64,000 nucleotides of DNA. It comes from Macrostomum lignano (taxonomy: Eukaryota). Of this stretch, positions 13,878 through 64,000 are shown piece by piece (within the stretch, counting starts at the first letter, position 1; the number at the start of each line of letters is the position of its first letter). A program made the position numbers and the translations under genes. The DNA lies in NCBI GenBank assembly GCA_002269645.1, contig NIVC01000297.1, forward strand, positions 124,001-188,000, read 5' to 3'. The notes beneath the pieces are model-generated. The model was not told where the DNA came from. It made no database searches and saw only the letters and a program-made list of their open reading frames with translations.

Positions 13878-14195
13878 TTTGGCAGTGGCCAAACCTCAGC
13901 TGCTGGACATCGATACAGCTCGATAGACACTGGCAGCGAGTGGCGGCGCTGCACTTTAATCAGCTGCAGCACAGGCCTGTCGGAGGGCGCGTGGGTGGGC
14001 GCGGCGTCTGTCTGCGGGAGCGGGCGGTGCTTGACGCGGCCAAATGTTTTGGCGCTATGCAATTACTATTGCTAATCACAGCACATGCATTCAGTGCAAT
14101 CACTCGGTGCTGTCAGTTTGAGGATGCGTATGGCGTTGCTATGCACAAAATTTTAGGGCAAAATTTTTAGTCTTCACTGATAAAGTGAATGGTCG

Positions 14196-14351
14196 GGTGA
14201 TCGAGTTAATGCTCAGGTGATCGAGTTAATGCTCAGGTGATCGAGTTAATGCTCAGGTGATCGAGTTAATGCTCAGGTGATCGAGTTAATGCTCAGGTGA
14301 TCGAGTTAATGCTCAGGTGATCGAGTTAATGCTCAGGTGAATGCTCGGGTG
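14196..14351. repeat. 20-bp minisatellite (GGTGATCGAGTTAATGCTCA) x~7
   Basis: Perfect tandem copies just 3' of the GPCR stop codon. Confidence 0.95.
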
Positions 14352-36300: not shown

Positions 36301-37394
36301 GGGGGATCACGTAGCGGACTCGTGCTGCATTTAGCGTCCCACAATGCCAGAAGACTGAGCAATAGTTTTCACAACTGGCCAATCAGCCAGCGTCAAATAT
36401 ACACTTATAATTTTTAATCCCGTTTTAATTTCTAATAGTTGTAGGAATTTATTTAAGCTGCTGCAGAAGCAGAAGAGCCGCTCAGTTGTGAGGCTTTCAG
36501 CCCAGAGCACCAATTGGCCAGCGTGCTCATTCTGCCAGCCCCGACCCGGCGCATGCACTTGTCATGCTGGTGTAGTCGCTCGCTCTCAACAGCTGACCTG
36601 CCTCACCAACGCATCCTCTCAATGGCGGTGCATGGATGGACTCTGAAATTACTTGACTGAGAATACGATTGGAATTCAAGTGGGAATCCAATCAAAGCAA
36701 TCTTTTAACTTATACTCCAATAAAATGCTCCAAGAAAATGAGCAATAGTACTGTAGAATCGACTGAGTTATTGGCACATTCTGTGTAAAAGTACAAATAA
36801 AAATGACTAGAAACAATGACTGAGATAAGAAAGTTTGCAAAACTGTGTTTGGGGAGGAATTTCTGCTTTAGATTAAAGACAAAGATCTTCTTGGCTTAGT
36901 TAGTTAGAATCTATTTAGTTACCGGTAGTATTGGGTCACAATGGCAGTTTAATGGAGTTTATTAGTGGTAAATACGCGTCTTTTTTGTTTGTTTGGCCTC
37001 ACATCTATTAGAAAGCACACACTATTTATATTTAGGCGACAGTCATTACAGCGAAAACTTGCCGGATGCGGATTTCTTTGCATCAAAAGGAACCGATAGC
37101 AGGGTAAAAAGATAAGATAAAACGTGGCTCACACGAGCAAGCATTGCTTCAAAAGGCTTAGAAAAGGCAAAATGGTCACCCTGCAGCAGAATGGTTTGCA
37201 CGGACGCGCCCAGTTACTCAGCATGCAGAGATTGCATCTCCAGCAATAACAAAACATATCCTCTTGACCTTTAAATCAAAATAAAAACTCTGCACTGGCT
37301 ACCTAGAGGCCAGAGCTGATGGGGGGCTGTCGTCATTACTTTTTTTAGACAGTGAGAGAGCAAGCCTTGCACTGCTGCCGTCCCAGGGCTGTTC

Positions 37395-37868
37395 AGGGAG
37401 TAGCGGCACTCTGTGGTAGCACTGGCAGGGAGTAGCGGCACTCTATGGTAGCACTGGCAGGGAGTAGCGGCACTCTGTGGTAGCACTGGCAGGGAGTAGC
37501 GGCACTCTGTGGTAGGACTGGCAGGGAGTAGCGGCACTCTGTGGTAGCACTGGCAGGGAGAAGCGGCACTCTATGGTACATGTAGCACTGGCAGGGAGTA
37601 GCGGCACTCTATGGTACATGTAGCACTGGCAGGGAGTAGCGGCACTCTATGGTACATGTAGCACTGGCAGGGAGTAGCGGCACTCTGTGGTAGCACTGGC
37701 AGGGAGTAGCGGCACTCTGTGGTAGGACTGGAAGGGAGTAGTGGCACTCTGTGGTAGGACTGGCAGGAAGAAGCGGCACTCTATGGTACATGTAGCACTG
37801 GCAGGGAGTAGCGGCACTCTATGGTACATGTAGCACTGGCAGGGAGTAGCGGCACTCCGTGGTAGGAC
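37395..37868. repeat. ~30-38-bp minisatellite (GGCAGGGAGTAGCGGCACTCTGTGGTAGCACT)
   Basis: About 14 copies, some with a TACATG insertion. Confidence 0.92.
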
Positions 37869-38426
37869 TTTTCAGGTTTTTGACATCGCCGCGCAGATTG
37901 GACGAGCAAGACTTGAAAGAGAAAATACAACGTTTCTGAAACTGGCAGAGGGATTTCGCGGAAAACTTCGCTGGTTATTTAAGATGTTCTCAGCGAATGA
38001 TAGGATAAGTTTTTGGCGGAGTTGGTTATTGAGTGAGTCCAGCTGCTGCTGTCGCTTTTGCTGCTCGGATTTTTCGATTTCTGGACGCCATTCGGGCAGG
38101 TCGGTGAGTTGCTGTCATCAAATAGCACGGTGCATTTCTGTTTTATGACCGGTATTGAAGACTTGAGAAGTCAAACTTTTACACGCGAGCATGAGGTCGC
38201 TGTCAGCCCAATGACCAATCAGAGCTGGATCATTTCTGCCAGCATCTGAGAGTTAACACAAGCCCTCTCAGCTTTATAGCCAGCATCAATGCGAATTGGA
38301 AAATTCTTTTCGATTAGCTCATGCCATCTCACCGAAAGCGCGCGCCCAGCCAGCATTTTGGACTTGCGCCTCACTGTGGCTGGGGAAGACTGAATTAGCG
38401 CCACGTATTGACTGCAGGCAACTGAA

Positions 38427-39287
38427 GTGGCAGAAGTGCGCAGTGTTCCATCCTGGCATAAGCGCGCATTGGCAGAAGTGCGCAATGTTCCATGCTGGCA
38501 TAAGCGCGCATTGGCAGAAGTGCGCAATGTTCCATCCTGGCATAAGCGCGCATTGGCAGAAGTGCGCAATGTTCCATGCTGGCATAAGCGCGCATTGGCA
38601 GAAGTGCGCAATGCTCCATGCTGGCATAAGCGCGCATTGGCAGAAGTGCGCAATGCTCCATGCTGGCATAAGCATGCATTGGCAGAAGTGCGCAATGCTC
38701 CATGCTGGCATAAGCATGCATTGGCAGAAGTGCGCAATGTTCCATGCTGGCATAAGCGCGCATTGGCAGAAGTGCGCAATGCTCCATGCTGGCATAAGCA
38801 TGCATTGGCAGAAGTGCGCAATGCTCCATGCTGGCATAAGCGCGCATTGGCAGAAGTGCGCAATGTTCCATGCTGGCATAAGCGCGCATTGGTAGAAGTG
38901 CGCAATGTTCCATGCTGGCATAAGCGCGCATTGGCAGAAGTGCGCAATGTTCCATCCTGGCATAAGCGCGCATTGGCAGAAGTGCGCAATGTTCCATGCT
39001 GGCATAAGCGCGCATTGGCAGAAGTGCGCAATGCTCCATGCTGGCATAAGCGCGCATTGGCAGAAGTGCGCAATGCTCCATGCTGGCATAAGCATGCATT
39101 GGCAGAAGTGCGCAATGCTCCATGCTGGCATAAGCATGCATTGGCAGAAGTGCGCAATGCTCCATGCTGGCATAAGCATGCATTGGCAGAAGTGCGCAAT
39201 GTTCCATGCTGGCATAAGCGCGCATTGGCAGAAGTGCGCAATGCTCCATGCTGGCATAAGCATGCATTGGCAGAAGTGCGCAATGCT
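38427..39287. repeat. 42-bp minisatellite x~20
   Basis: Unit TGGCAGAAGTGCGCAATGTTCCATGCTGGCATAAGCGCGCAT. Confidence 0.96.
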
Positions 39288-44368: not shown

Positions 44369-44830
44369 CCGGTGTCCCAAAAGTTCCCGGAATCTTTGCC
44401 CTAGCTCCTCAGTACCTTGGCCAATTGTTATGTTTTATGTGTCAGACTAAAGATAATTTTTCAACGAAAGATGCAGAATTCGTCAGAAAGATGCAGAAGC
44501 GTCTATGGGTTTCATAAAACTTGCTGATCAGATCTTGCGTTGCCAGCGCTTGCTTATTCCATACCAAGTGCTTGCTTTTCGCTAAGAGTTCTCTCCATAG
44601 CCTTGAGAGTCAGCGGAGTCAATGATGAAAAAAGGATTGCGCAACACTAGTACTGACCTTCCTTCACAGTTCCTGGTGTAACTCTTTACCAAAACCAGAT
44701 AGAAAGGAAATTCATATGACAAGTTTTTCGTTGAAAAAATTTCTTTAGTCTGACACATACAACATAAAAATTGGTCAAGGTACTGAGGGGCTAAGGCAAA
44801 CATTCCGGGAACTTTTGGGACACCCCTCGG
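44369..44830. mobile_element. Tc1/mariner-type MITE with ~100-bp TIRs and TA TSD
   Basis: 44369-44470 is approximately the reverse complement of 44725-44830; termini CCG..GTGTCCCAAAAG; TA at 44367-44368 and 44831-44832. Confidence 0.8.
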
Positions 44831-44833
44831 TAG

Positions 44834-47635
44834 TTAAAAGACTCGTTTTTGGCCCTTGAACGGAAGGGAAAGAGATGGGCTACGGCACACAGTAAACAGC
44901 TGGCACAGAGGCATTGCATGTCGGATATTCGAATATTCGGATCTAAGCGGCTCTTGCGTCAACCGAGTTCCAATCAGAAAGTGAGCTGGTGTCAACACGT
45001 CGTTGATCTCATCTGCCGATACGTAGACCAGTGGTCTGCTGTTTACAATGGATTCGACTTCGATAACCGAAGTGGATAGTTCATCAAATGTTAGTAAAGC
45101 TTTGCCAATGCTCTTTCGAAGGCCGTCTTTTACCATACAGACGAGCCTTTCCCAGAATCCTCCCCACCAGGGAGCCTTTTCAGGAATGAACGCCCACGAT
45201 ATTCTCTTGTTAGCACAGAACGATTGAACTTCGTAACTGGTGCTTGCTCCTAGAATCCTTGCAGCGGCCTTGAATGTCTTTGCGTTATCACTGATAATGG
45301 AAGGTATTCCTCTCCGACTGACAAATCGTCGTAAGCCGTTCAAGAACTGAGCTGTAGTCATATCAGAAAGTAGTTCTAGATGAATTGCGCGAGTGGAGGA
45401 GCACGTGAACAGTAGTACATACGCTTTTCCCGTTTCACTACCATCCTCCCCCGTCCGATAGAACATCGGACCACAATAATCAATGCCGACGGATTGAAAA
45501 GGTCGAATATCGGCAAGACGAAAGTCCGGTAACTGAGAAATCTGAGGCACTGTGTAGGAGCGTCCTTGAATCTTTTTACACACTACGCACTTCGACAATT
45601 CCTGCTTTGTTCGCTGACGGCCTTTCACGATCCAGTACTTTTCACGGACCTTACATAGCGTCGACGCGACTCCTTCGTGAGCAACTGCCTGATGAGCGTT
45701 TCGAATTATAAGCTGCTCTAACGGACTGTGTCGAGGCACTAAGATCGGATTGTTTACATCGAAGGACATCACCGAAATCCGACCGCGCGAACGCAACAGA
45801 CCAACTTCGTCCAGCCAAAGATTCAAATCTCTATTTAGTGGTGTGGCCGCCGAACCATTCTGAATGTGACAAATTTCTTTTGAAAATTCTTGTCGTTGAA
45901 CTGACATCAACAAAAGCTCTTCTGCAGTATTGAGCTCTTGTGCTGTCAGTGCTACTGCTCTGTTAGTCGTCTGACCGACTAGACTACTTTTAAGGTTGTT
46001 GACAAATCTCCTTATCCAAGCTAGGACGCGTACTAAACGGGAATAACGTGAAAATCTACTTATGTCAACGACGGAAGAGACGTTCAGTGTACCATGTGCT
46101 CCTTCGCTCTGGTCATCACTTTGTGACACTACTCCTGTAATGAAGTCCTCAGCAGCAACGCTTAACTGCAGATCGTCAGGCGAAGGCTGGTAGAAGGAAG
46201 TGTGAAGGAAGTTGGGACCGCTTAACCACACAGCATTATTCTGCAGCTGTTCCGGCAGACAGCCGCGAGACGGCAGGTCGGCAGGATTCAACTCCCCCGG
46301 AACATGTCGCCATTCAGATGTCGAAGTTAGAAGTCGAATCTCTTTGATGCGATTCTGGACGAAAACCGGTCGAAGTTTTTCTGTGTTCGTAATCCACAAG
46401 AGAGTCGTCCTGCTATCTGTCCAGAGATAACGAGGAACCTTCGGAAACTGAGACGAAACCATTCGCATCAGACGCGCCAAAATGAGAGCTCCCAACAATT
46501 CCAGTCGGGCGATACTAAGATTCGAAAGCGGTGCTACGCGCGTTTTTGCCTGAATTAGCTGCGTCGTAATCTTGCCTGTGTCCGAATAAGCCTTGATATA
46601 CACGCAGGCGGCATACGCTGATGAACTGGCGTCACAGAATCCATGCAGCTCCAATTTTGTCGGCACTGACTCGAGAGTGGCGAATAAATAACGAGGAATT
46701 ACAAACTGCGAGTGCATCAATGACTGCAACCACTGGTTCCAAATCTCGGCGATGTCTGGTGGTAGTTCGTCGTCCCAACCATACTTTCGAACGCACAGCT
46801 TTTGCAACAGCACCTTGACAACGGTCAAAGCAGGCGATAGAACGCCCAATGGATCGTACACCGAGGCAAGCACTCCTAACATCAACCGCTTAGAGGAAGG
46901 CGAGGCAATAGCCTTGTCAACCAGATCCTGGAAGTGAATGAGGAAGACATCCTGAATAGAGTCCCAGCGGAGCCCTAGAACTCTCTCAGCGTGACCGACA
47001 TCCTGACCGGGCACCGACCTATTAAACGAATCCGAATTGGACTTCCACTGTCGCATATTCATGCCTGCGGACTTGAATATCACTTTAGTATCCTGGTACA
47101 GCTGGAGGGCTTCCGTTAGAGATTTACAGCTAGTAACTAAATTGTCGACGTATAAGTCTCGGCGAATGACATTGACGGTCGTTGGAAAGGTCTGCTGGTG
47201 AAAATCAAGGTGTTGAACTACCGTAGCTCGCAAGATACCAGGAGAGCACGTGAGACCGAACGGTAACCGACAGAATCGGTAGTGAAAAACGTTGTTTGGC
47301 TCGCTCGGAGAGTCCACAAAAATCGTAAGTAATCTCTGTCCTGAGTTTCAATGGCTATCTGCAGAAAGGCCTTCTCGATGTCACCTGTGACAGCAATAGG
47401 ATTGATACGGAACCGCATCAGAATTTCTGGTATCAGCGGAACATCAGTTGGACCGACGTGAAGTAGATTATTAATAGAGACGTCTCCACCCCGACTTTTG
47501 GCCGATCCATCAAAGACAATGCGTAACCGTGTGAACTCACTGTCGGCCTTGGTGACGTGGTGATGGGGTAGATAGTGGCAGTTCTTATTGCCTAAATCCT
47601 CCTCAGGCACTTTTTCAATTATGCCAGATGCTTTG
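44834..47635 (-). mobile_element. BEL/Pao LTR retrotransposon pol fragment (RT, RNase H, integrase), truncated at both ends
   Basis: YLPHH...RIVFDGSAK, DIEKAFLQI, LYVDN, LHGFCDAS, PLSNLSIARLELLGA, WRHVPGELNPADLPSRG, GIDYCGP, SDNAKTF, PWWGGFWERLV. Frameshift near 47290. Confidence 0.95.
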
Positions 47636-47829
47636 TTTTAACAAAATGAATAACTGACTGCATCCTCCCCCCAAAAAACTAATTTAATTTTTTTTTACAT
47701 CGAGACTCGAGGAAAAAAGAAAAAAACAAGGACCACAAGTTAGGTTAATTAGTTTAGGAAAGATTTAAGACGCTCATACTATAGTTAAATGAATGAAGAT
47801 GAAGCGAATTCAGAAATTGACTGGGTGGA

Positions 47830-48672
47830 GGAATGAGCAGAAGACGAATCCGAGAGACGAGCGAGACTGAAGTGCCCCCGGCCAACAAATCGAGACCAGG
47901 AACCGGCAGACACAACAGGACGCGCACTGGGCAGACGAATGAGCAGAAGAAGACGATCCAACGAGCGAGACTGAAGTGCCCCCGGCCAACGAATCGAGAC
48001 CAGGAACCGGCAGACACAACAGGACGCGCACTGGGCAGACGAATGAGCAGAAGAAGACGATCCAACGAGCGAGACTGAAGTGCCCCCGGCCAACGAATCG
48101 AGACCAGGAACCGGCAGACACAACAGGACGCGCACTGGGCAGACGAATGAGCAGAAGAAGACGATCCAACGAGCGAGACTGAAGTGCCCCCGGCCAACGA
48201 ATCGAGACCAGGAACCGGCAGACACAACAGGACGCGCACTGGGCAGACGAATGAGCAGAAGAAGACGATCCAACGAGCGAGACTGAAGTGCCCCCGGCCA
48301 ACGAATCGAGACCAGGAACCGGCAGACACAACAGGACGCGCACTGGGCAGACGAATGAGCTGAAGAAGACGATCCAACGAGCGAGACTGAAGTGCCCCGG
48401 CCAACGAATCGAGACCAGGAACCGGCAGACACAACAGGACGCGCACTGGGCAGACGAATGAGCTGAAGAAGACGATCCAACGAGCGAGACTGAAGTGCCC
48501 CCGGCCAACGAATCGAGACCAGGAACCGGCAGACACAACAGGACGCGCACTGGGCAGACGAATGAGCTGAAGAAGACGATCCAACGAGCGAGACTGAAGT
48601 GCCCCCGGCCAACGAATCGAGACCAGGAACCGGCAGACACAACAGGACGCGCACTGGGCAGACGAATGAGCT
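47830..48672. repeat. 104-bp tandem repeat x~8 (within a putative LTR-element 5' leader)
   Basis: Near-identical 104-bp units, followed by three 21-bp repeats at ~48675-48740. Confidence 0.95.
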
Positions 48673-48800
48673 GCGAAGGCCAGACGAGAAGACAGCGAGG
48701 GCCAGACGAGAAGACAGCGAGGGCCAGACGAGAAGACAGCGGGATCACATCACTGTCACGATTTGCACTTGACGAGTGCTGTGCAGATCTATGTTATTTT

Positions 48801-49160
48801 TGTTCGGGCGCCATGTAATTAATATCAGTAAACACAGACAGATTTTTATTGGAATTGAACTACACAAACCAGCAGGAGAGGGCGCAGGGCCCAAAATTCA
48901 TATATTTATAAGACATTGCCTAAATTAGGGGGGGGGTGCATTCACGATAAGAGACGGGGGTGAATGATTAGAGCACGAGAGCGCGAGGGGGTAGAAAAAT
49001 GATAACGAAGAGCAAATAAGCGTGCAATGGGGAGTGGGTACAAGGTGCGACCAGAAGGCAGAGAAGGCAGAGATAGAGATAAGCACAGAGAGGCAGCCAA
49101 TCAGAATTAAGACATACAAACATACGCGAGAAGGTGGAACAAATGAAGAAAGTCGCTACA
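48801..49160 (-). mobile_element. Gypsy-type 5' LTR (48814-49160) with a tRNA-Lys PBS (48801-48813)
   Basis: Minus strand TGTAGCGAC...AATAAA...AATTACA immediately followed by TGGCGCCCGAACA, a 13-nt match to the tRNA-Lys(UUU) primer-binding site. Confidence 0.8.
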
Positions 49161-52100
49161 GCACATTACGAGTCCCGTTAGTAGGTAGCACAGGTGGACA
49201 TGACACATTACCAGTCTCGTCAGTAGGCGGCACAGGTGGACATGGCACATTACGAGTCCCATTAGTAGGTAGCACAGGTGGACATGACACATTACCAGTC
49301 TCGTCAGTAGGCGGCGCAGGTGGACATGGCACATTACGAGTCCCGTTAGTAGGTAGCACAGGTGGACATGACACATTACCAGTCTCGTCAGTAGGCGGCA
49401 CAGGTGGACATGGCACATTACGAGTCCCGTTAGTAGGTAGCACAGGTGGACATGACACATTACCAGTCTCGTCAGTAAGCGGCACAGGTGGACATGGCAC
49501 ATTACGAGTCCCGTTAGTAGGTGGCACAGGTGGACATGACACATTACCAGTCTCGTCAGTAGGCGGCACAGGTGGACATGGCACATTACGAGTCCCGTTA
49601 GTAGGTAGCACAGGTGGACATGACACATTACCAGTCCCGTCAGTAGGTGACACAGGTAAACACGGCACATTACCAGTCCCGTCAGTAGGTGGCACAGGTA
49701 AACACGGCACATTACCAGTCCCGTCAGTAGGTGGCACAGGTAAACACGGCACATTACCAGTCCCGTCAGTAGGTGGCGCAGGTGGACACGGCACATTACC
49801 AGTCCCGTCAGTAGGTGGCACAGGTAAACACGGCACATTACCAGTCCCGTCAGTAGGTGGCACAGGTAAACACGGCACATTACCAGTCCCGTCAGTAGGT
49901 GGCGCAGGTAAACACGGCACATTACCAGTCCCGTCAGTAGGTGGCACAGGTGGAGAGTGAGAGATCGAGGCCGACTGCAGCAGAGCTGGGGACGCTGAGC
50001 TGAGGACTCGCGGATCCTCAAAGCTTTGATTTGAGGCGGAGGCTGGGTAACTCGCATACGGATTCGCTGCTAGAAAATCGTTTCCTCTGTGCGGAGCGGC
50101 CTGCGCATTGGGATCGCCAGCCGACTTTTTTCCCAGACTGAGCAGCCGCAGCTTCAGTACAGACAGGTAGCAGAGATGGAACAGGAGCTCCACCATTTCC
50201 AGCAGGGTGATGGTCGACACTCCAACCCAGAGACCTGAAGTTGCGGCAAATGCAAAAAGTGAAAATTTTGGTTTCTGGGATTAAAGTAAGAGCCGCGAAT
50301 CACCAACTGCTTTGAAACTCACCAAGGATTCCGCCCAAATCGGAAAACAAGTTCCGCAGCTCGTAGGCGAATGACTCATTAAAGAAGCTGACTTTGATAG
50401 ACTTTGGATGCAGATCGAGGACGCTGATGAACTTTTCTCTTATCATGAATGACGCATGCATGTAAAGGGTTTGCGGCCGATAGGTGGACAGATTCCGGGC
50501 GGCAGCTTTACTGATCAGTTCTGTCGCATAGTCTTTCAGAGCCACCTCAGCGAGCCAGGAGTCCCGGGGCCAAGAGGCCAGGTGGGTGGCGACGCTGTAG
50601 CGGGTGTTGCTGCAGCGGACCGGGCACTGCTTGGCCCACACGCCCTGCGACTTCTGGCGTTGAAGAACCCGATGGAAGCATTTGACCCGCTGAGCAACGT
50701 GTTTGTACACGTCCCAGTTCTGCTGCAGGTACTCGGACAGGGTGATGTATGCCGAGCTCCGATTCATGATAGTGTACTCCGTCCTGTTGAACCTGTTCTG
50801 CCGGTGGTTTATGTCCAGGAAAAACACCTGGAATTGGAAAAATGATTCGCCTGTCTGCATCATGGAACGTCGAACAGAAATTATTTGTCTTCATTGTTGA
50901 GCTTGTCATTCTCAGCCCAGATGCATAAGCTTCATCTTTTAACGATTCTATGTATAACTTAGTGACCATCTAAGACGTTTTGTTTACCTGAAGCTCTCCA
51001 AAATAGCTTTTTAAGTTTCTTTTATTTTTATTTCCCAATTCGAATTGGCGAGCTGGTTAGTGAATTAAATTGGCCTCACCTCCTCAGGCAGCAGGTGGCA
51101 CACCTCGGTGCTCTTCATGAGGTCACTGGGCAGCGCCAAATGAGATCCCAGGCAGCCGCAGGTGTCTCTAAACTCCTCCTGCATGATCTTCATGACGCAG
51201 TCCTGGTAGGTGCCAAAGAAGGTCTGCTTCTCCAAGTGGCCTGGCATCGAGAAGTTTGCGATGTAGGTGGCGTTTGGCAGTTCAACGCTGCACGGCGCGG
51301 CTTTCCGGTTGACTTTCGTTTCCAACTGCACTCTCATCTGGGCTGTGGTCTTGTAGCCGTAGGGGACGCTGAAGCCGGTCTTCATGTCCGGTTTGAAACC
51401 TTTGAGTGAAATTATCAGCACGAATCTCTCGTTTCACAACGAATCACAAAGTTCTAAAAAACACACAGTCTACAGTCTAGTGTGCAACATCAAGTAGAAA
51501 ATGTCTATTCTGCTACATCTGCTAAGTTAAAAGTTCTGGCTCAGATCTAATGCAGTTATTAGCCACTCAAAATGACTGCGTTTCCCGAATGGATAACAGT
51601 TAAAATACTGTGTTCGGGTAAAACATACTTCAGTTAGTCTAATATTCAAAAATAGAAGCAAAAGTGCTGAGACAAAATTAGATAGTTGTGGTGTGGCACC
51701 AAGTAGAGCATTCAACTGCGAAAAACGGATGGGTAAATTATGGTTCCAAATTGAGCTACTTTGTTAGAATGTATCAGAGTTACTTTCAACTTTGTACCTG
51801 AATTTTTGTCGGGTGGGCACTTGGTTTTTTAATTTGCGCTCCTCTTAGAAAGAAATAAAATTCTCCGAGGATCCAAGTGAAGCACTATACCTCGGAAGTG
51901 CTGCTGTAACGGTTTATGTGTTAGAGCTTCGTCTTCTGACTTGGTGTGAAGTTAGTGAATTGGATCAGTAGTGCAGGGCATCAACATTCGGCAGTGCTGT
52001 ACGGACATTGCAGGCAGTGAACTTCTTCAAAGCGTATATTCGATAAGATAGGACTTGTTGGGACAGTGTGCATGTGCGTTTGTGTGCATGTCGACCGCGC

Positions 52101-53968
52101 TGACCGCGACCGCGCTGACCGCGACCGCGCTGACCGCGCTGTGGTGTTCACCGCGTTGTGGTGTTGACCGCATTGTCGTGTTCACCGCGCTGTGGTGTTC
52201 ACCGCGCTGTGGTGTTCACCGCGCTGTGGTGTTCACCGCGCTGTGGTGTTCACCGCGCTGTGGTGTTCACCGCGCTGTGGTGTTCACCGCGCTGTGGTGT
52301 TGACCGCATTGTCGTGTTCACCGCGCTGTGGTGTTCACCGCATTGTGGTGTTCACCGTATTGCAACCGGCCCAACAAGTGCCGCATGCATATTAATTTAA
52401 GCGCGCTTGTCTGCGTACAATGTCCGCACGATTTTTATGTGCGCTGCAGTCAGCAAATGGGCGGAATTGTTGGTGGGACAGAGTCGCCAAAGGCGTTGCG
52501 CCAGGGGCCCTACAGCCGCCATGCAGTTATTTTTAGTTTTATTACTATTAAAATTATTACCACTAATATTTTATTCCATAGTGAAAAAGCATACCATTTT
52601 CATGCAGGGCCACTCGAAACCCAGGCGTGTTGTCGACCAACTCCGCATTTGTCAAGAATGAGAAAGCATAGTTGTAGAGCACCAGGTACAGCCCGTTGCC
52701 TTCACCAGATTGCGCGATGGTCTGGTTGGTGGGATTGAAGGACATGCACATGAACCTGCCGGGTTTGTGATGGTCGGGTTGGTGGGATTGAAGGACATGC
52801 ACATGAACCTGCCGGGTTCGTGATGGTCCGGTTGGTGGGATTGAAGGACATGCACATGAACCTGCCGGGTTTTTGAAATAAAGCGGAGCAAATTTCCAAA
52901 TCGCATAATTGCATTTACTTTGAGTGCACTGCAGCTGCCCCTGCTGCGGCATGTCAGCAACTCTGCCTGGGTCTAAGAGTTTGCTATTCACTTTCCGACA
53001 CACTTTGGGTCTGGCTGCTATGATTGAAATGCTTGATCATTGAGTATAATTAAGTTATTGAATGAAAGCATGGACTGTCACCTGTCCTCGTCCTTGTAAA
53101 CAGTAAAGTTCTCAAATGAGCAGGGCTCCGAGTTGTACCGACAGTAGATGATGGTCTCATGCGGAAGCTGGAAGTTCACTCCCCGGTAAGCTATGGACCG
53201 CAGTCCCAGCTTTCCATCGAAGTAGGCATCGAAGTTCTCCTCAGGCATGGAGACGTTCCAGTTGTCCAGCTTCAGCTGGTAGAACAGCAACGGGATGTCG
53301 AAGATCATGTTGTTCAGGTTCCTCCAGAGGCCTGCATCGCAAACTCAGCGATATTGCACATCAGTTGGATGCGAAATCACTCGAGATCAGCTTACAGTAA
53401 CGGATTGATTGCTGCATCATTCTACAGAAACGTTTACTATGAACCGTAACTTTATTTTTGCTTTAGGACTTACGTCACAGAGAAAATCCCAAAGCTCCTG
53501 TTTAGTTTCTAACCAAGGCATATCGGTATGCTTCACGAAGGTCTCAATTCAGAGACATCTGGGTTTCAGAATACTCGAGAGCTCACCTGGGATGGCATAG
53601 CTGCTCGGAACCGAAGGACCCTTAAAAATGATGAAGTAGGTCGGGCAGATGGTCACGGTCGGGCAGATGGTCACGGTCGGAAACTTGAAGTCCGCCCCCT
53701 CGCTTGAGAACTCCGTGCTCACCGGGTAGCTCAGGTACCGCTCGATGAGCTGATGGAGGTGCAGGGAGAATCCGGCAGCAGCGCCCAGAATCACCAATAC
53801 CCATAAGAATCGACTCAGTCGAGAGCCCCGAGTCAGGTGCATAAATCCGTGAGCTGAGGTGCTCTCCGCAAAGGAGACAATTGCCTCTTGGTGAATCTTT
53901 CCTAGCTGGGAGCTCGGCAGCTCTGGCTGCTCCTGCCGTCTGGATTCCATGTCGATGCTTTCTGCCAT
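49156..53968 (-). CDS. DEG/ENaC (ASIC/FaNaC-like) channel paralog 1, ~898 aa; exons 53587-53968, 53082-53331, 52595-52755, 51080-51399, 50323-50827, 49156-50234
   Basis: STSAHG motif, TM1, FPTVTIC, Cys-rich thumb (CGCL, CPVRC) and pre-TM2/TM2 DLGGILGLWVGVSTITLLE with GxS filter. All GT-AG junctions are phase-consistent; exon sizes 250/161/320/505 match paralog 2. Confidence 0.9.
49161..49950 (-). repeat. 39-bp minisatellite in frame with the channel's last exon (PTDGTGNVPCLPV-like x~20)
   Basis: ORF 49156-50220 runs from TM2 through the whole array without a stop. Confidence 0.93.
52090..52360. repeat. ~12/17-bp tandem repeat (ACCGCGCTGTGGTGTTC) in a channel intron
   Basis: Directly visible. 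Confidence 0.9.
52703..52870 (-). repeat. 53-bp triplication spanning the exon-3 acceptor of DEG/ENaC paralog 1
   Basis: CCGGCAG|GTTCATGTGCATGTCCTTCAATCCCACCAACC occurs three times; exon starts at 52861, 52808 and 52755. Confidence 0.93.
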
Positions 53969-55334: not shown

Positions 55335-58300
55335 TTATATAGAGAAGATTCGCTGGAACCAGGAAGGATTGTACTGCTCGGAGAAGCCCCGCCCGCCATC
55401 GGAGCCGTCCGGCGGGACCCCCTGAGGCTTCGGCGGCAGCGAGATGTGCAGCTGCAGCTCCGACTGCCCGTCAGGACTCTCCGCCTTCGCTTCGCCCGAC
55501 GCGTAGATGTCGCGGAGCGAGTTTTCCAAGAAATCCGATTGAGCGGCTGGGCGCGGCTGAACTTGCGCGCTGGCGCTGTGCAACCGGAGCGCCGATAAGT
55601 AGCCCAGCTGCACGACGAGCTCCAGCAGCTCCATCAAGGTGATCACCGATACGCCAACCCAGAGGCCTGGCGAAACAAACCGAAGCAAACAATTCTTGTG
55701 GCACGCACACGGACTCATGCACACGGACTCATGCACACGCACTCATGCACACAGACTCATGCACACGGACTCATGCACACGGACTCATGCACACGGACTC
55801 ATGCACACGGACTCATGCACACGGACTCATGCACACGGACTCATGCACACGGACTCATGCACACGGACTCATGCACACGGACTCATGCACACGGACTCAT
55901 GCACACGGACTCATGCACACGGACTCATGCACACGGACTCATGCACACGGACTCATGCACACGGACTCATGCACACGGACTCATGCACACGGACTCATGC
56001 ACACGGACTCATGCACACGGACTCATGCACACGGACTCATGCACACGGACTCATGCACACGGACTCATGCACACGGACTCATGCACACGGACTCATGCAC
56101 ACGGACTCATGCACACGGACTCATGCACACGGACTCATGCACACGGACTCATGCACACGGACTCATGCACACGGACTCATGCACACGGACTCATGCACAC
56201 GGACTCATGTACACGGACTCATGCACACGGACTCATGCACACGGACTCATGCACACGGACTCATGCACACGGACTCATGCACACGGACTCATGCACACGG
56301 ACTCATGCACACGGACTCATGCACACGGACTCATGCACACGGACTCATGCACACGGACTCATGCACACGGACTCATGCACACGGACTCATGCATACGGAC
56401 TCATGCACACGGACTCATGCACACGGACTCATGCACACGGACTCATCCACACGGACTCATGCACACGGACTCATGCACACGGACTCATGCACACGGACTC
56501 ATCCACACGGACTCATGCACACGGACTCATCCACACGGACTCATGCACACGGACGACGCGTGGAAGCACCCGGAAGTGGAACTCTCACCCAAAATGCCAC
56601 CCAAGTCGGAGAACAAGTTGCGCAGCGGGTAGGCCCAGGACTCCGTGGACACGGTGGCGCTTGTGGACTGAGGGTACAGATCCAGCACGCTGATGAACTT
56701 TTCTGAGATCATTCTGGAAGAGTACCTGTACAGCACCCTGAGTCGGTAATCGGACAGATTTGTGCCAGCGATTGAAGCTCGGATGTCCTGCGCGTAGCCC
56801 CGCAGTGCTGACGCGGCCTTGGAGGACTCGCGCGGCCAAGCCGCTAGGCTGGTGGCCACACCATAGCGCGTGTTGCTGCACCGGACCGGACACCTCGTGG
56901 TGGCTACGCCTTGCGTCTCTTGGCGGTATCGAACCCTACGGTAACAAGCAATCATATTGGCAGTGGCATTGTACACCTGCCAGTTGGACAGCAGGTAGCT
57001 GGCCAGGCTGATCCAGTCCCATGTGCTGTTGGTTATCTTGTACTCCCTCAGCTTGTACTCGTTCGTCTTGTAGAAAATGTCGAAGAAAAACAGCTGAAGC
57101 GGGGAAATTGTTTAGGATTGATCGAGATTGCATGGATTATGTATGAGGTTCATGGACAGGTGAAGCAGAAGTGATCTAGATTGCACAGATGATTTATGCA
57201 GGTTCATGGACAACTGAAGCAGAAGTGATCGAGATTGCACAGATGATGTATGCAGGTTCATGGACAGGTGAAGCAGAAGGATGTTACGATCGCAAATCTC
57301 GCACATTTCACTGGAGGTCGGTTTTCACTGCAGAATGCATTGGCGAGACGGGAAGTTTTCAGTTATTCAGAGCTGAATTCAAAATTGCTCAAATTCTGCT
57401 CATCCAGATCCCAAGTGAAACAAGTTTGTGTTCCGCTCGAAGTTTCTAGACTGAAAAAAAGCAAATCCTGACGACATTCTTTTAGAAAACACTGCTTTCT
57501 AAGAGCGCTATCGCTTTCTAATGATCTTTTTTCCAACTTATTCTCAACAAACTTGTGATTAAACTTCGAACGAAACATACACTTGCTACACTTGCACACA
57601 CTCCAGAAGGTGCAAATAGTGCAAAAAAACACTGACAATTTTCTATCTCAGCCATGCATTGTACAGCAAAAACCGGTCTCGAGCGAAATTTGAATGATTT
57701 GCGAGTGCAGCGCCCGTTGTACTTTAGTGGCTCATGGCGAGTAGCTCGAACGAGCACTTGACACAAATCTTTTCAAAAGTACAGTCATCCAACTTTTCTG
57801 TTGGTCGCACTTCTTCGGGTAGCGAGTGGCACACGCCAGTGTCGCTCATGAGGTCGCTGGGGAGCGCGAGGTGAGTCCCCAGACAGCTGCAGGTGGCCTT
57901 GAACTCCTCCTGCATGAGTCGCGTGATGCAGTCGCGAGTGCTGCCAAAAAAGCTCTGATTTTCAAAGCTGTCGGGCCACGAGAAGTCCACAGTGTAGGTG
58001 GCGTTCGGCAGGACATCGCTGCACGGCGCGGCTTCCCGATTCAGTTTTGTGTCGGTCCGAACCGTCACCTCAGCCGAGGTTTTGTAGCCGAATGGAACCG
58101 TGAATCCGGAGTTCAAATCGGGTTTGAAGCCTCCAAGGAAAAAAAACAGGTTGCGATGTTTTATTGGGTTGCTCAATATTAAAATATCAGAAAGAATTGT
58201 ACCATCAGAAGATGCGTTGCGGGATTTTAAATCGCTGTTCCGATGGTCAGTTTAGCTCGTAGAGGAATTCCAAATCCATGTGCAAAATTGAGAGCCACTA

Positions 58301-58985: not shown

Positions 58986-59169
58986 CTGAAGTGCAGCGTT
59001 GTTGCTCATGCTTGCAGTGTTTAAAGTGCATCGCACAGAATAAAAAGCTTTAGTTTGTTAGTTGGCTAAAAGGAAAAATAAAAGCAAGATTTTTGTTCAT
59101 GGTAAGATTTGATGGTGGTGTGAATTTGAGCGATCTCGCAGCAGTGATCCAGCACGCCTGTGAAATATG

Positions 59170-62100
59170 AGCCAGACTAGGCCCACGGGCTATGGTCTGC
59201 GATTTTTTACACCTGCTTCCCCTCTCCAAAGCAGGCATGGCTGGAGATCCAATCTCCATGCTGCATCACTAGCCGACCCAGGGGTACACGCCCCGCGGGT
59301 GTTCAAGGTGGACCCTAGGGCCACTGGACAGACCCTAGCGCCGGCCACCCTTCCGGGGCTTTGGCCTTAGCCAAGCCGCTAGGGTACGGGTTCTCCCGGT
59401 GCGCGTACCTGTGCGCTATCAGGTGCCTCTGGCTACGGCTTTGAGGTAGAGGTGCTACCCCTTTGACCTTACAGGGTATGCGGCCAGTCCGCAGTTTCGC
59501 GTACCTGTGCGCTATCAGGTGCCTCTGGCTACGGCTTTGAGGTAGAGGTGCTACCCTTTGACCTTACAGGGTATGCAGCCAGCCTGCAGGCTCTTGCACA
59601 CCCAAAAGTGCACTCCAAGCCTTCGGTGTCTGCCGTGCCTATGGGTTCTTGGCTGGGGAGTAGTCCAGTCGCGAGCGGCTCTTTTCTTTTTTCTTACCTC
59701 TCTTCTTTTCTCGCTTCCAGCTATGGCCTCTTCCACCACTCCAAATGAAGCTGGGCTAACCCCAGCCGCTCCGGATGCTGCCAAAGGCAGCTCCAACTCT
59801 GCCCCGCCCAGCCCGACTGGTGGGGACAAGATCGACACCACTGCCGGCGCTGCCGGTGGTGAGTCGCGCACAGGGCGCAAGCAAAACCGCCATGGCGGTC
59901 GCTCCGCTGAAGCCCGACGCAACCGCCAGGCGCGCAAGATCGAGTGGCGGCGACAAAAAGCTGCTGCGGACTCGGCACAGTCGGCTGGCGGTGCTGCGTC
60001 GGAGAAGCCCCATGGTGAGGATGGGGCCGCGGTGGAGCCGAAAGACTCTGCCGCTGGCTCTGCCTCCCTCAAGGGCACCTCCACCTCTCAGCATGCCGCC
60101 AACCAGGCTACAGCGGCCGGACCCTCGGGAACTGCCGCGTAAGCCACCACCAAGACCAAGACCAAGGAGAGCTACGCCTCCAAGGTTCAACGGACTGCAC
60201 TCCCACCGGCCACCATCATTCTCGGCGAGGAGCGCAACCTTACGGCCCCCGAGCGCATCATCGACGCTGGGCTCATCGACCTCACCATGGAGGGCATCTC
60301 CGTGGAGGTGGTGAAATCAGCCAAGACTGACGGCTGCATTTTTCTCTGGTGCTCATCAGAGGAAAACAGCCGCCGGCTTCGCGAGCTACTTCCCCGCCTT
60401 AAGTGGAAGAAGGAGCTCGCCAAGCTATTTTTCGCCTCTGAAGGCGAACGCAAGAGGACCGAACGCTATCGTGTTTGGATCCCGGCCATGAGCGCCATCA
60501 AGTCTGGGGAGCAGCTGAGGCTTCTCATGCTCAAGCGCTTCCCTGACCTGACCTTAACGCCAGTGAGCTCTACTGCCATGGCTCCGCCTAGAAAGGTGCG
60601 GGGGGTTTTACGGCGATCATGGGGCTCTCTGACGAATGGTCTAAGCGGGTTCCGCACAAGACCACTATCTGCATCGGCCTGCATCAGCTGACTTTCCTCC
60701 GATGCGAGGAAGGTAAGGCTGAAGCTAAGCCGACTAAGCGCACCGCACCTCCTAAGGGAAAGGACGCGGCTGCCCAAAACCTGTTGGTGGATCCCCACCC
60801 AAATAAAGCAGTTCGTGCTGCCGAATCTGCCCCGCGCCATCGCAAACCTGCCCGCAGCACACGCAAGTCGGGCCTGGTTCAGCGTGCGCTAGCGCAGGCC
60901 CATGACCTTCGGGAACACCTGGAGCGTCGACGCGCCAAAAAAGACCCTCCTCAAACCGGACTGTGTGGGTCAGGAAGTGATGGTGCGGCGGGCACTGACT
61001 GGGCTGAGGAATCCAGCCATCAGGCAGAAACCGCCGTCCACCATGACCTACCCACCGGCTCGGTTCAGGACTCCCCCAACGTTCACGCTGCGGCACAGGA
61101 TGAGGAAGGTGAAGCCAAGCGGTCCAGGCTCTCGCCAGCTGGTGGCACCACCACCCTCTCTGCGCCGCACGCTGTGGATGATGAGGAGCCCATGGAGGTC
61201 AGCAGACCCTCCATTTCGGAAGAAATGAAGGAGGAGCTGCTACGTGAATCCCCGAGCAACTAGCCATGCCTAGTAATGCGACAGGGATCAAATATCTGCA
61301 GATAAATCTGCAGCACAGCGTCGCAGCTTCGGTGAACCTAATGAGGCATGCCGAGCGCGACAAGCCGGGTCTTATCCTAGTCCAAGAACCCTGGACCTTT
61401 AAAGGAAAGCCCCAACACGTGCCCGGTGGGTATCAGTGTTTTAGCACGTGCCCTAGGGACGGAACACTACCACCGAGAGCTTGCATCTACGTGGTAAACT
61501 CCTTAAATGCCTGGATCAGAGGAGACCTTTCAAATAGGGACCTCTGCGTCATTCAAACGGAAAATCTCCTACCGGGAAAGACGACCAGCTGATCGCCTCG
61601 GTTTACTTACCGGGCGACAAGGTTGTTGTCTCGGAGGAGCTTATCTCACTGGTGGAACTCTGTTCTGCCAGAAACTACGAGCTAATGGTTGCTGGCGTTA
61701 TAAATGCTCACCATACTCACTGGGGCAGCACAAACATTAATCAGAGAGGCGAAGACCTCCTGACCTATGTTGCCTCCACAACGCTCGAGTTCTGCAACTC
61801 AGGCAACACCCCTACTTTTGATAACGGGCGTTGGGCGGAGGTCATCGATGCCACTCTTGCCACACCAAGACTCTACCAGAGAATTGATGAGTGGCAGGTC
61901 CTTCCTGTGGCGTCTCTCTCTGACCACAAGCTCATCTCCTTTAACGTGACCAGCGCACAGCGCAATGACCATATCATCTGGAGACGGAATGCTAGGAACA
62001 CTGATTGGGAGGCCTTAAAGTTCACCCTGGATTCAACCCTTCGGGACTCCTACTTTCCGATCTCCATTGACTCTTGCCAAGAAACGGAGGTTTGTGTGGC

Positions 62101-64000
62101 TGTTCTCACGGACTCGCTAACCTCCGCTTTCGAGGCCTCCTACCCGCTTAAAGCCTACAGGGGCAAAACGTCGGCTCCGAGGTGGAACCCTAAGCTTGGC
62201 GACCTCCGCCGCAAAGCCAAACGGTTACATCGCAGGGCCACCAAATCTAAACGCCCAACGGACCAGACCGCCTACCTTGAAGCAATTCATGAGTTCAAAA
62301 AGGAGGTCATGAACGCTAAGGCTAACAAATGGCGCGAATACTGTGAGGAACTGGAGGGCGCACGCCCTACATCCCGCATAGTAAAAGCGCTGAACTTGGA
62401 CAAAATTTCCAAACTTTCCTCGGTAAAGCGGGCCGACGGCACGCATACCGAGAATCCTGGGGAGACGCTGGAGCTTATGCTTTCAGCCTCCTTCCCAAAT
62501 GAGGCCCTCGCAAATGATCCCTCGGACCATGCTGAAGGCTCCACCGTTTCTGGCCTCTTCCTTTATTATGAAGGAGCGCATCATGAAAGCTGCAAACTCT
62601 TTTAAACCTTATAAAGCGCCTGGACCAGACGGCATCGTATCGGCCCTAATTAGAGAGGCGGTCCAATGCAAGAGGTTCCTCACGCACCTTTGCAAGATTC
62701 TCAAAGCCTGCATTACGTTTGGCTATGTCCCGAAACTGTGGACTGAGGCGAGGGTAATTTTCATTCCTAAGCCCGGCCGCCCGGACTACCATTCTGTTAA
62801 ATCCTTTAGACCAATCAGCTTGACCTCCTCGATGGTCAAACTGATGGAACGGCTGGTGCTCTGGCGCCTGCAGTCCGTGGAGCTAAAGAACATGCCGCTT
62901 AGCGAGAACCAGCACGCTTTTCGGGCAGGACTCTCCACCGAAAGTGCGCTGCATATACTGGTGGAGAAGCTGGAGAAAGCTGTGCTTGGCAACGGCTATG
63001 CCCTAGCGGTCTTCCTGGATATCGTGGGAGCCTTTGACAACGTCCTCTTCGAGGCGTTTCGAAGGGCTCTACAAACGAGAATGACACAGTCTCACCTCAC
63101 GCGGTGGATCATGTACATAATTAGCCACAGATCTGCTACGGCACACCTGCTAGGTCATGAACGGACGGTTCCCGTCTGCAAAGGCTGTCCGCAAGGTGGT
63201 GTCCTATCTCCAATTCTCTGGAATATGGTTATCGACGAGCTTCTACGGGATGCCTGTCCTAACTCTATTCTGAAGGTTGGTTATGCTGACGATGTCACGG
63301 CGGTAGCCTCTGGGCCATCGCCGGACACCCTGTGTGATCTCCTTCAGAACTTCATTAACAGAACTTCGTTGGGCGGACCGATGCGGTCTGAAGCTCTCCG
63401 AGACTAAGACCGCTGTGGTCATATTCACCAGCAGGACGAAATGGCAATCCCGCCATCTCACGCTCTACGGACAGGAAATCCCCTTTCGTAAGCAAGTCGG
63501 AAACGGCCCCTCACCATTGCTGAAGGGTCTTGGGGTCACCCTTGATCACAGGCTGAACTGGTCCCCGCATGTTCATGCCAAGACTAAAAAGGCCTTCGCG
63601 ATCCTGGCGCAACTGCGCAGGGCGGTTGGCACTACTTGGGGCCTTACCCTCAAACGCCTCTGGTGGATCTACACTGCTATGGTCAGGCCGGCGATCTCCT
63701 ACGCCGGACTGATCTGGGCGAGTGAGCTGCAGATTAAGACCTGCTTCGAGGCTCTTAACGAGTGCAGGGGCGCGCTTGTCGAATGATAATGAGCGCCCCG
63801 CCCTCTGCTCCCTTCGACGGCCTCAACGCCTTCCTTGACCTGCCTCTGCTGGACATTTTCGTCCGCAGTGCGGCGGCCAAGGCAGCCCGGCGTCTCATCG
63901 ACACCGGCATCATTCTCAAGCCCCAGAGGGCAATGGCTAAGCGCAAGCTTCTGCCTCACTCCGACCTCTGTCTCAAAGATTTGCTGGAGAGCGGCGGCCT
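59170..64000 (+). mobile_element. Non-LTR retrotransposon (R1/LOA-type): ORF1 ~59723-61263, ORF2 from 61266 (APE + RT), runs off the window, with disabling mutations
   Basis: APE LQINLQHS...LVQEPW, INAHH, TPTFDN...IDATL, SDHK; RT KAPGPDG, RPISLTS, FLDIVGAFDNV, GCPQGGVLSPILWN, YADD, LGVTLD. In-frame stop at 60140-60142 and several frameshifts; the 5' boundary is approximate. Confidence 0.93.

Follow-up and report, generated by a model that had tools for sequence, protein, structure and literature searches.

The DEG/ENaC genes of the window

Two DEG/ENaC genes lie in tandem on the minus strand of the window (the whole 64-kb stretch of Macrostomum lignano DNA that was analysed); the downstream one is referred to here as paralog 1 and the other as paralog 2. 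The spliced model of paralog 1 comprises six exons with GT-AG introns and encodes 898 residues. The Pfam ASC profile (PF00858) matches this model with E=6.4e-54 (184 bits, cut-off 23.6) over its full length, i.e. profile positions 1-455 of 455 on model residues 33-537, and the match runs through the second transmembrane segment (TM2). The hallmarks of the family can be read in the model, including the HG motif (SAHGF), TM1, FPTVTICP, the conserved ectodomain cysteines and the G-x-S motif of TM2 (LWVGVS).

All exons lie on the minus strand. Exon 1 (53587-53968) starts with ATG at 53968 and carries the HG motif, TM1 and FPTVTICP. Spliced exons 2 (53082-53331), 3 (52595-52755, with the third of its acceptor copies used, see below) and 4 (51080-51399) are 100% identical to the M. 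lignano gene model P0271 (UniProt A0A1I8I7M7), an identity that ties the window to this species. Exon 5 (50323-50827) ends with ...NLFSDLGGILG, the start of TM2, which is continued (LWVGVSTITLLEMVELLF) in the unique part of exon 6 (49954-50234; acceptor AG at 50236-50235), followed by 93 codons of cytoplasmic tail. Read from the acceptor (AG / 50234), the exon-6 ORF consists of G-LWVGVSTITLLEMVELLF (TM2), the 93 unique codons, 19 repeat units and a stop codon, without internal stop. No database protein covering exons 5-6 was found, and exact-protein database look-ups of the exon-6 ORF, P0271 and P0122 (a close relative described below) returned no record.

Paralogs 1 and 2 are about 58% identical in amino acids, a distance at which Ks is saturated and Ka/Ks would be uninformative on recent constraint. 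In paralog 1, each of the six exons is open and flanked by canonical splice sites. The retention of open exons and splice sites despite this divergence implies that paralog 1 was constrained for most of its history, and therefore that the lesions described below are recent. Paralog 1 need not be dead.

A 42-nt minisatellite in the last exon

After the unique codons, the gene frame enters a minisatellite of 19 units of 42 nt (49161-49953, minus strand; identified with TRF and by direct reading). TRF reports a single array at 49161-49954 with period 42, 18.9 copies, 88% matches and 0% indels. The unit measures exactly 42 nt, or 14 residues, with the consensus PPVPPTDGTGNVPC, and the 19 units together encode about 265 residues. 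A preliminary description had correctly placed an in-frame array after TM2; its estimate of about 20 units of 13 residues (some 260 residues) is replaced by these figures. The array is composed of two blocks, the first with eight A units (LPVPPTDGTGNVPC; 49953-49618) and the second with 11 units in which B (PPVLPTNGTRNVPC) alternates with C (PPVPPTDETGNVSC), forming an 84-nt higher-order repeat (49617-49161).

A period divisible by three and a unit free of stops in the gene frame let the channel ORF run on through the array; all 19 units are open in this frame, and the array is open in three of its six frames. Each unit also contains GTAATG, a possible splice donor. The units differ by 13 types of variant, of which three are synonymous and ten non-synonymous in the gene frame, as against an expected synonymous share of one third, and more of the changes are synonymous in either of the other two frames; with 13 variant types only, and concerted evolution between units, this comparison is a blurred one. 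The variation among units looks neutral, i.e. at this low power the constraint on the peptide that would mark a coding VNTR was not seen.

The encoded peptide contains 38 bare PxxP motifs, five [RK]xxPxxP motifs, no PxxPx[RK], no PPxY and 18 cysteines. The five [RK]xxPxxP motifs, which match the class-I SH3 ligand consensus, sit in the B units; SH3/PxxP motifs are of low information content. On this peptide composition, a function of the tail is conceivable. No protein with a similar repeat was found among database proteins, and a literature search on coding minisatellites in cytoplasmic tails yielded nothing useful. Further copies of the unit were found neither in the window (fuzzy 42-mer search) nor in L001. 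Another array of 42-nt period (38428-39287) was considered as a possible relative and rejected, as the units agree in at most 19 of 42 positions in any rotation.

The LTR and the BEL/Pao element

The last unit is broken off after AATGTGC; an intact unit goes on with CATGT, and here TGTAGCGAC follows instead. Direct reading confirmed the preliminary description in that the ORF ends AAT GTG C/TG TAG, with the first bases of an LTR providing the stop codon: the TAG at 49156-49158 (minus strand) represents LTR bases 3-5 (TG/TAG). This 5' LTR of BEL/Pao type (48814-49160, 347 nt, minus strand, thus gene-sense) was recognised by its internal features, as a single copy in the window. It has TG..CA ends (TGTA...TACA; in full TGTAG...TTACA), a CCAAT-like box, a TATAAA sequence at 48910-48905 and, as also described earlier, its own AATAAA (48850-48845), about 306 nt past the stop codon. 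This poly(A) signal is where transcripts of paralog 1, if there are any, should terminate. Immediately after the terminal CA of the LTR, a putative primer-binding site starting with TGG could be read directly (TGGCGCCCGAACA; 48801-48813, minus strand); the window holds no tRNA gene.

The expected place of gag and protease is occupied by element-internal tandem arrays (22 nt x3 and 104 nt x7.8; 47857-48741, minus strand). These are followed by a BEL/Pao pol region with RT, RNase H region and integrase in two ORFs (44834-47637, minus strand), after which there is no 3' LTR. Profile matches above cut-off identify BEL/Pao (PF05380, 4.6e-46) and integrase (PF17921, 8.5e-08) sequences, and matches below cut-off were obtained for rve (27.3 bits) and RVT_1 (22.5 bits). 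All 505 homologues of pol are of BEL/Pao type, the best with 36-43% identity, and no pol homology was detected upstream of 47637. Self-BLAST with word sizes of 16, 11 and 7 revealed neither a second LTR nor a target-site duplication in the window. A search for further copies of the retroelement, against which the end of the LTR could be verified, found none: identity to the best pol homologues is at most 43%, and L001 contains no copy. The element, with no second LTR, gag or protease, is a truncated, non-autonomous remnant.

The conserved C-terminus and the origin of the array

The last exon of paralog 2 (55335-55666, minus strand) ends with ...LQLHISLPPKP...NPSWFQRIFSI, the conserved C-terminus of the family, its final residues being ...YNPSWFQRIFSI with the stop at 55335. 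The conserved end (PSWFxRIFS[IF] or WVHRLFGI) is common to paralog 2, paralog 3 (P0184) and P0123, and the tails of paralogs 2 and 3 align with a score of 98, compared to 26.7 +/- 5 for shuffled sequences, none of 2000 shuffles reaching 98. Paralog 1 lacks this end, which bears out the earlier suggestion that its ancestral C-terminus is gone. Neither a displaced remainder of the array nor the ancestral 3' end was found elsewhere in the window by blastn and tblastn with the paralog 2 tail and flank, or by a fuzzy search with the 42-mer.

The proposal that the unit resembles a stretch of paralog 2 did not hold up: the local protein alignment scores (29-37) are those of shuffled sequences (29-34 +/- 6; p=0.34-0.50), and at the DNA level 868 of 1000 shuffles score equally well or better. 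When the whole tail of paralog 1 is compared to paralog 3, the best local alignment does fall exactly on the unit (PPVPPTDGTGNVPC against PPKPP-PGSTEQPC), with p=0.13; at the DNA level nothing is detectable between the unit and the paralog tails (p=0.3-0.9). The array starts about 16 codons ahead of the position of the paralogs' stop codons. Growth of the array from coding sequence is plausible, as its position would fit and paralog 3 offers a similarity, at p=0.13.

Alternatively, the array could be foreign DNA, for instance a repeat-bearing mobile element, which landed in the last exon and is open in frame by luck. Mobile elements in this region do carry internal arrays, as illustrated by the 104-nt and 22-nt arrays of the BEL/Pao element and by a dispersed repeat with a 32-nt array common to the window and contig NIVC01000151.1, and the comparisons of the unit with the paralog tails are not significant for either protein or DNA. 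We nevertheless consider a foreign origin unlikely, since the unit has no second copy in the window or L001, the array starts at the position of the homologous PPxPP...PC stretch of paralog 3, which gives the best local match of the whole tail, and its flanks show neither terminal repeats nor any other signature of insertion.

Further repeats in paralog 1, and a twin copy of the gene

Two additional repeats affect paralog 1. In exon 1, an 18-nt tandem duplication (53639-53680) adds a second TVTICP, i.e. a duplication of six residues within the conserved FPxVTxC motif, which is single in P0124 and P0001. At exon 3, a 53-nt sequence repeated three times (52716-52876, minus strand) triplicates the acceptor (cccggcag/G) together with the first 44 nt of the exon. 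Use of the acceptor AGs at 52861 and 52808 would lead to stops at residues 264 and 263, respectively, and only the third, at 52755, preserves the frame and would give the normal product. Paralog 2 has a single exon-3 acceptor.

The protein P0122 (UniProt A0A1I8HIE6) represents a 97% identical twin copy of paralog 1. Four of the four differences that could be polarised are derived in the copy of the window, a bias that is not significant (one-sided p=0.06). An exact-protein look-up gave no record of DNA of the twin copy or of the paralog 1 locus in public assemblies.

Repeat background of the window and the genome

Tandem arrays are abundant in this region, with 33 of them covering 22.7% of the window, and arrays unrelated to that of paralog 1 generate ORFs of 276-387 residues in several frames. 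Since such long ORFs arise in other arrays, and three of the six frames of the paralog 1 array are open, its open reading frame is to be expected by chance. In the same window, a gypsy element (27286-36261) with 254-nt LTRs of 99.6% identity sits inside a 35-nt satellite, so insertion of an LTR element into an array has a local precedent. More than half of the M. lignano genome consists of repeats, including 21% LTR retrotransposons and 15% simple and tandem repeats, and the genome is partly duplicated, with 180 Mb in duplicated blocks of at least 95% identity (PMC5730564). We considered the missing GenBank BOX15 model of paralog 1 as a sign of silence and rejected it as such, as transcripts overlapping repeats were filtered out in that annotation (PMC5730564).

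Probable erosion of a redundant copy

The array and the LTR are real in the sequence, and a new protein tail is unproven. From these features, paralog 1 is probably a decaying redundant copy, and we infer that its lesions accumulated without selection; the array tail would then be no evolved interaction module. We propose that a 42-bp minisatellite expanded in the 3' part of the final coding exon, about where the tails of the relatives end. A gene-sense LTR retrotransposon of BEL/Pao type would have inserted in the array or at its end, its first bases (TGTAG) closing the ORF after two nucleotides. Everything beyond the junction, including the conserved PSWFxRIFS[IF], is gone from the locus, and the element itself is a wreck with neither gag/protease nor a 3' LTR. 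If the gene is transcribed and correctly spliced, the 265-residue extension, rich in Pro, Thr, Val and Cys, would be a by-product tolerated in place of the normal C-terminus. The working channel with a new polyvalent tail that was envisaged in the preliminary description is not supported: three of the six frames are open, the units vary in a neutral-like way, and of the two other repeat lesions in the gene one puts the frame at risk.

It is quite unlikely that the array is a translated and selected new C-terminus, in which a multivalent PxxP/Cys tail rewires scaffolding or trafficking and the LTR has been domesticated as stop and poly(A) site. Several properties would suit this reading: the array is in frame with a 3n period, its peptide is rich in PxxP, [RK]xxPxxP and Cys, the other parts of the exons are intact, the LTR provides a canonical, sense-oriented AATAAA, and replacement of the conserved hydrophobic motif would change the binding partners of the channel, if expressed. 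They are countered by the lack of an excess of synonymous variation, the chance expectation of an open frame, the absence of PPxY and of any similar repeat among database proteins, the two additional disruptive repeats within paralog 1 and an amino-acid change faster than in the twin copy (4:0, p=0.06, not significant). Moreover, LTRs lying within genes in sense orientation are as a rule harmful and under negative selection (PMC1794541, PMC6466679). Were the array translated after all, a conserved, PDZ-ligand-like hydrophobic C-terminus would have been swapped in one step for 19 Pro/Cys modules (a class-I SH3 consensus being present in five), with the LTR serving as stop and poly(A) site, and copy number might vary between worm lines and make the interaction of channel and scaffold tunable; such a scenario seems distinctly improbable.

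It is very improbable that the junction was created during assembly, by a chimeric join or the collapse of a repeat, and that the real gene has a different 3' end. An artefact of this kind would fit the single LTR of the element, its lack of a target-site duplication and gag, the absence from the window of both the remaining array and the gene's 3' end, and the difficulty of M. lignano assemblies, which is due to repeats and duplicated chromosomes (PMC5730564). Against it, the break coincides to the nucleotide with a canonical LTR terminus, and the LTR, primer-binding site and pol that follow form a coherent series of one orientation; moreover, the independent annotation of another assembly is 100% identical over exons 2-4, and long reads easily span arrays of about 0.8 kb.

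Comparison with known systems and significance

The closest parallel to the array is the 48-bp VNTR in exon 3 of the human dopamine D4 receptor gene DRD4, a proline-rich coding repeat with motifs of SH3-ligand type (PMC3877354). In both cases the gene of a membrane signalling protein carries a coding minisatellite of 3n period, whose proline-rich unit falls in a cytoplasmic region. Translation of the DRD4 repeat is established; it lies internally in the third loop and is polymorphic in populations with 2-11 copies, whereas the paralog 1 array, with its 19 copies, is located at the very C-terminus, is truncated by a transposon and is known here from the sequence alone. For the LTR, comparable cases are the mouse IAP/ETn mutations, in which LTR/ERV insertions in sense orientation truncate genes by premature polyadenylation (PMC6466679, PMC3337433, PMC1794541). 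There too, a gene-sense LTR supplies termination and a poly(A) signal and the normal 3' end is removed. The mouse insertions are mostly intronic and proven by transcripts; in paralog 1 the LTR lies within the last coding exon and contributes the stop codon itself, and the use made of its poly(A) signal is an inference.

The gypsy element of the window likewise represents an LTR retrotransposon inside a minisatellite array. It has both LTRs and both halves of its array, and no gene is involved, whereas the locus of paralog 1 has a 5' LTR without a 3' LTR, and array sequence on one side only.

The C-termini of DEG/ENaC channels are cytoplasmic and contain short motifs that control trafficking. 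Regulatory motifs in the C-termini of ENaC and ASIC channels include PPxY, which binds Nedd4, and PDZ ligands, as in the binding of ASIC to PICK1. The relatives of paralog 1 end in a conserved hydrophobic motif (...RIFS[IF]) of hydrophobic-x-hydrophobic type; in paralog 1, by contrast, this end is lost and PPxY is absent.

If the tail were expressed, the locus would be a clean natural example of two mutational processes, minisatellite growth and LTR insertion, that together gave an ion channel a new cytoplasmic domain; since M. lignano is amenable to transgenesis, the case would be testable. For now, the main value of the locus is a warning for annotation: arrays with a 3n period routinely produce long in-frame ORF extensions in the M. 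lignano genome, and gene models that read through arrays are no evidence for new protein domains. Tandem duplications can, in addition, multiply splice acceptors. Finally, PSWFxRIFS[IF] is a conserved C-terminal motif in this Macrostomum DEG/ENaC subfamily and may merit study.

The last exon of paralog 1

Paralog 1, a DEG/ENaC channel gene on the minus strand, could be assembled as six exons (53968-53587, 53331-53082, 52755-52595, 51399-51080, 50827-50323 and 50234-49156) separated by introns with canonical GT-AG borders throughout, and the predicted product of 898 residues matches the Pfam ASC family from end to end (6.4e-54). The frame entering exon 6 from its acceptor (ttcag/GT, exon start at 50234) encodes G-LWVGVSTITLLEMVELLFHL..., the DEG/ENaC TM2, followed by 93 unique codons and then by 19 units of exactly 14 codons each. 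These units form a single array (49161-49954; period 42, 18.9 copies, 88% matches and 0 indels according to TRF), for which a second repeat search gave the same register. The first eight are near-identical A units (LPVPPTDGTGNVPC), while B (PPVLPTNGTRNVPC) and C (PPVPPTDETGNVSC) units alternate in the following 11, as an 84-nt higher-order repeat. The final B unit is broken off after AAT GTG C; an intact unit would go on with CA TGT, in place of which TG TAG CGA C adds a leucine and a stop codon (49158-49156). Direct reading of the minus-strand frame agrees with the exon coordinates and the junction of the preliminary description, in which the unit was taken as 13 residues instead of 14; its estimates of ~20 copies and ~260 residues come close to the 19 units and ~265 residues counted here. 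A donor-like GTAATG is present in 19/19 units (49161-49953, minus strand), as ACTGGTAATGTG or ACTCGTAATGTG, and the array might conceivably be spliced out at such cryptic sites.

A BEL/Pao remnant at the end of the frame

The stop codon lies in an LTR of 347 nt (49160-48814, minus strand) that begins with TGTAG and ends with TTACA, and that carries a CCAAT-like box, TATAAA at 48910-48905 and, 60 nt further, the AATAAA previously ascribed to it (48850-48845). Directly after the LTR, TGGCGCCCGAACA has the form of a putative tRNA primer-binding site; beyond it on the same strand follow a 22-nt array (three copies) and a 104-nt array (7.8 copies, 99%), together at 47857-48741 (minus strand), and then a BEL/Pao pol (Pfam PF05380, 4.6e-46) that also includes integrase domains. 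The coherent order of 5' LTR, primer-binding site and pol supports the earlier identification of the LTR. The two arrays occupy the place between the primer-binding site and RT where gag and protease are expected, and these are missing, since pol homology begins only at 47637. The element is a remnant. No 3' LTR was found within the window, and with it both a target-site duplication and the sequence beyond the insertion are lacking; neither the remaining array nor a homologue of the paralog 2 3' end was found in the window. Immediately past the pol stop codon lies a MITE-like foldback of ~460 bp (44370-44828) with inverted termini of ~90 nt (GGGGTGTCCCAAAAGTTCCCGGAA...).

Other lesions and relatives of paralog 1

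Besides the 42-nt array, two further tandem repeats strike exons of paralog 1. A perfect 18-nt tandem duplication (53639-53680, minus strand) adds a second TVTICP within the conserved post-TM1 FPxVTxC motif, which is single in the related proteins P0124 and P0001. A 53-nt repeat in three copies (95% matches; 52716-52876, minus strand) spans the exon-3 acceptor, single in paralog 2, together with 44 nt at the start of the exon. Since 53 is not divisible by 3, the mRNA stays in frame only from the third AG, the first leading to a stop at residue 264 and the second at 263; the original pyrimidine-rich tract is upstream of the first AG. All exons are still open and every splice site is canonical, implying that any decay would be recent.

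An exhaustive HMMER search identified P0122, a twin copy with 97% identity to spliced exons 2-4, and its cluster mate P0271 (UniProt A0A1I8I7M7, Macrostomum lignano), with 100% identity to the same exons. Paralog 1 differs from P0122 at 5 residues. Comparison with paralog 2, P0278 and P0001 allowed four of these to be polarised; the derived state is in the window copy in 4/4 cases, which is suggestive of relaxed constraint (one-sided p=0.06). The duplication that gave rise to paralogs 1 and 2 is old, as their exons are 53-69% identical.

The second DEG/ENaC gene, paralog 2, is situated upstream of paralog 1 in the same orientation, with exons spanning 58968 to 55335 and a C-terminus ...YNPSWFQRIFSI*. 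A tblastn search of the window upstream of it (59050-64000) revealed no DEG/ENaC exon 1 homologue; either its first intron exceeds 5 kb, or the gene may be 5'-truncated. Most of its last intron is occupied by a 14-nt minisatellite (55705-56554, 60.7 copies, 98%) that stops 38 nt short of the acceptor and contains ORFs of ~300-355 residues in three plus-strand frames. A third paralog, P0184, is located on contig NIVC01000151.1 (Mlig_3_7 assembly), which also has a dispersed repeat in common with the window; together with the match to P0271, this identifies the window as M. lignano.

Loss of the conserved C-terminus and origin of the array

Paralogs 2 and 3 share a homologous tail, ...LQLH[IV].LPPKP...PSWF[QE]RIFS[IF], with an alignment score of 98 against 26.7 +/- 5 for shuffles (0/2000 reach 98). 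It ends in ...PSWF[QE]RIFS[IF]* (window 55335-55420; NIVC01000151.1 sequence, 10750-10825), and the related protein P0123 in WVHRLFGI*. Both ends have a hydrophobic-x-hydrophobic form, which we take to be like that of class II PDZ ligands. The comparison shows that this C-terminal motif, conserved among the relatives, is absent from the predicted product of paralog 1.

The likeness of the unit to a stretch of paralog 2, noted in the preliminary description, is at chance level (protein p=0.34-0.50; 868/1000 DNA shuffles as good). Paralog 3 makes a slightly better case: the best local match between the tails of paralogs 1 and 3 is exactly the unit (PPVPPTDGTGNVPC against PPKPP-PGSTEQPC), and its distance from TM2 is as expected, but p=0.13, and no DNA-level similarity of the paralog 1 tail to paralog 3 was detected. 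We therefore consider growth of the array in situ from coding sequence, as proposed earlier, to be plausible. That the array is of foreign origin seems rather unlikely, and would be compatible with the reading preferred below.

Interpretation of the open frame

The open frame of the array is not beyond chance expectation. The unit is open in 3/6 frames, including 2/3 sense frames, and clearly non-genic arrays of the window have ORFs of 276-387 residues in several frames. The 19 units show 13 variant types (12 transitions). In the gene frame 3 are synonymous and 10 non-synonymous (expected synonymous share one third); the corresponding figures for the remaining two frames are 6/7 and 5/7. In this weak test there is no sign of purifying selection on the array peptide.

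We propose that paralog 1 is a redundant DEG/ENaC copy in which a minisatellite arose at the 3' end of the coding region and a BEL/Pao element, inserted in sense orientation, cut the gene short, in either order; the long ORF would be a by-product of the 3n period. We regard this history as probable. Transcripts, if any, would end at the LTR poly(A) signal, as they do in mouse genes that carry an LTR in sense orientation (PMC6466679, PMC3337433), and would encode a channel minus the conserved C-terminus. The lack of a gene model in GenBank carries no information here, since repeat-overlapping transcripts were filtered out of the annotation (PMC5730564).

The array might also be an adaptive addition, predicted to serve as a new cytoplasmic tail of the channel. 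Its peptide has 38 PxxP, five [RK]xxPxxP and 18 Cys, a content loosely like that of the DRD4 exon-3 VNTR (PMC3877354); we regard this reading as improbable. A mis-join in the assembly, by which the arrangement would be artefactual, is very improbable.

Repeat landscape of the window

The M. lignano genome is more than half repetitive, with 21% LTR retrotransposons, 15% simple and tandem repeats, and duplicated blocks at >=95% identity totalling 180 Mb (PMC5730564). With a heavy repeat load and many redundant gene copies, a copy that combines repeat expansion with truncation by an LTR is the kind of lesion to be expected. Tandem arrays (n=33) make up 22.7% of the window; the period is divisible by 3 in 15/33 (45% against 33% expected), an excess that is not significant (p ~0.1, a rough, non-computed estimate). 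A Ty3/gypsy-type element (27286-36261; pol ORF 29177-33046, minus strand), with LTRs of 254 nt (28915-29168 and 33047-33300) that are 99.6% identical, lies within a 35-nt satellite, with 46 copies to one side of it and 84 to the other. It represents a recent insertion of an LTR element into a minisatellite, and so provides a precedent 15 kb away for such a landing. A dispersed repeat family with a 32-nt minisatellite (36470-37980) recurs on contig NIVC01000151.1 (5257-6615 and 11368-12088 of the sequence compared) with 85-94% identity.

A 905-residue ORF without a Pfam match lies in a GC-rich (61%) stretch (1344-4061, minus strand). Another ORF (14363-15247, minus strand), adjoining a 20-nt array (14184-14340), has a weak rhodopsin-family GPCR match, barely over the cut-off (7tm_1, 2.8e-07).
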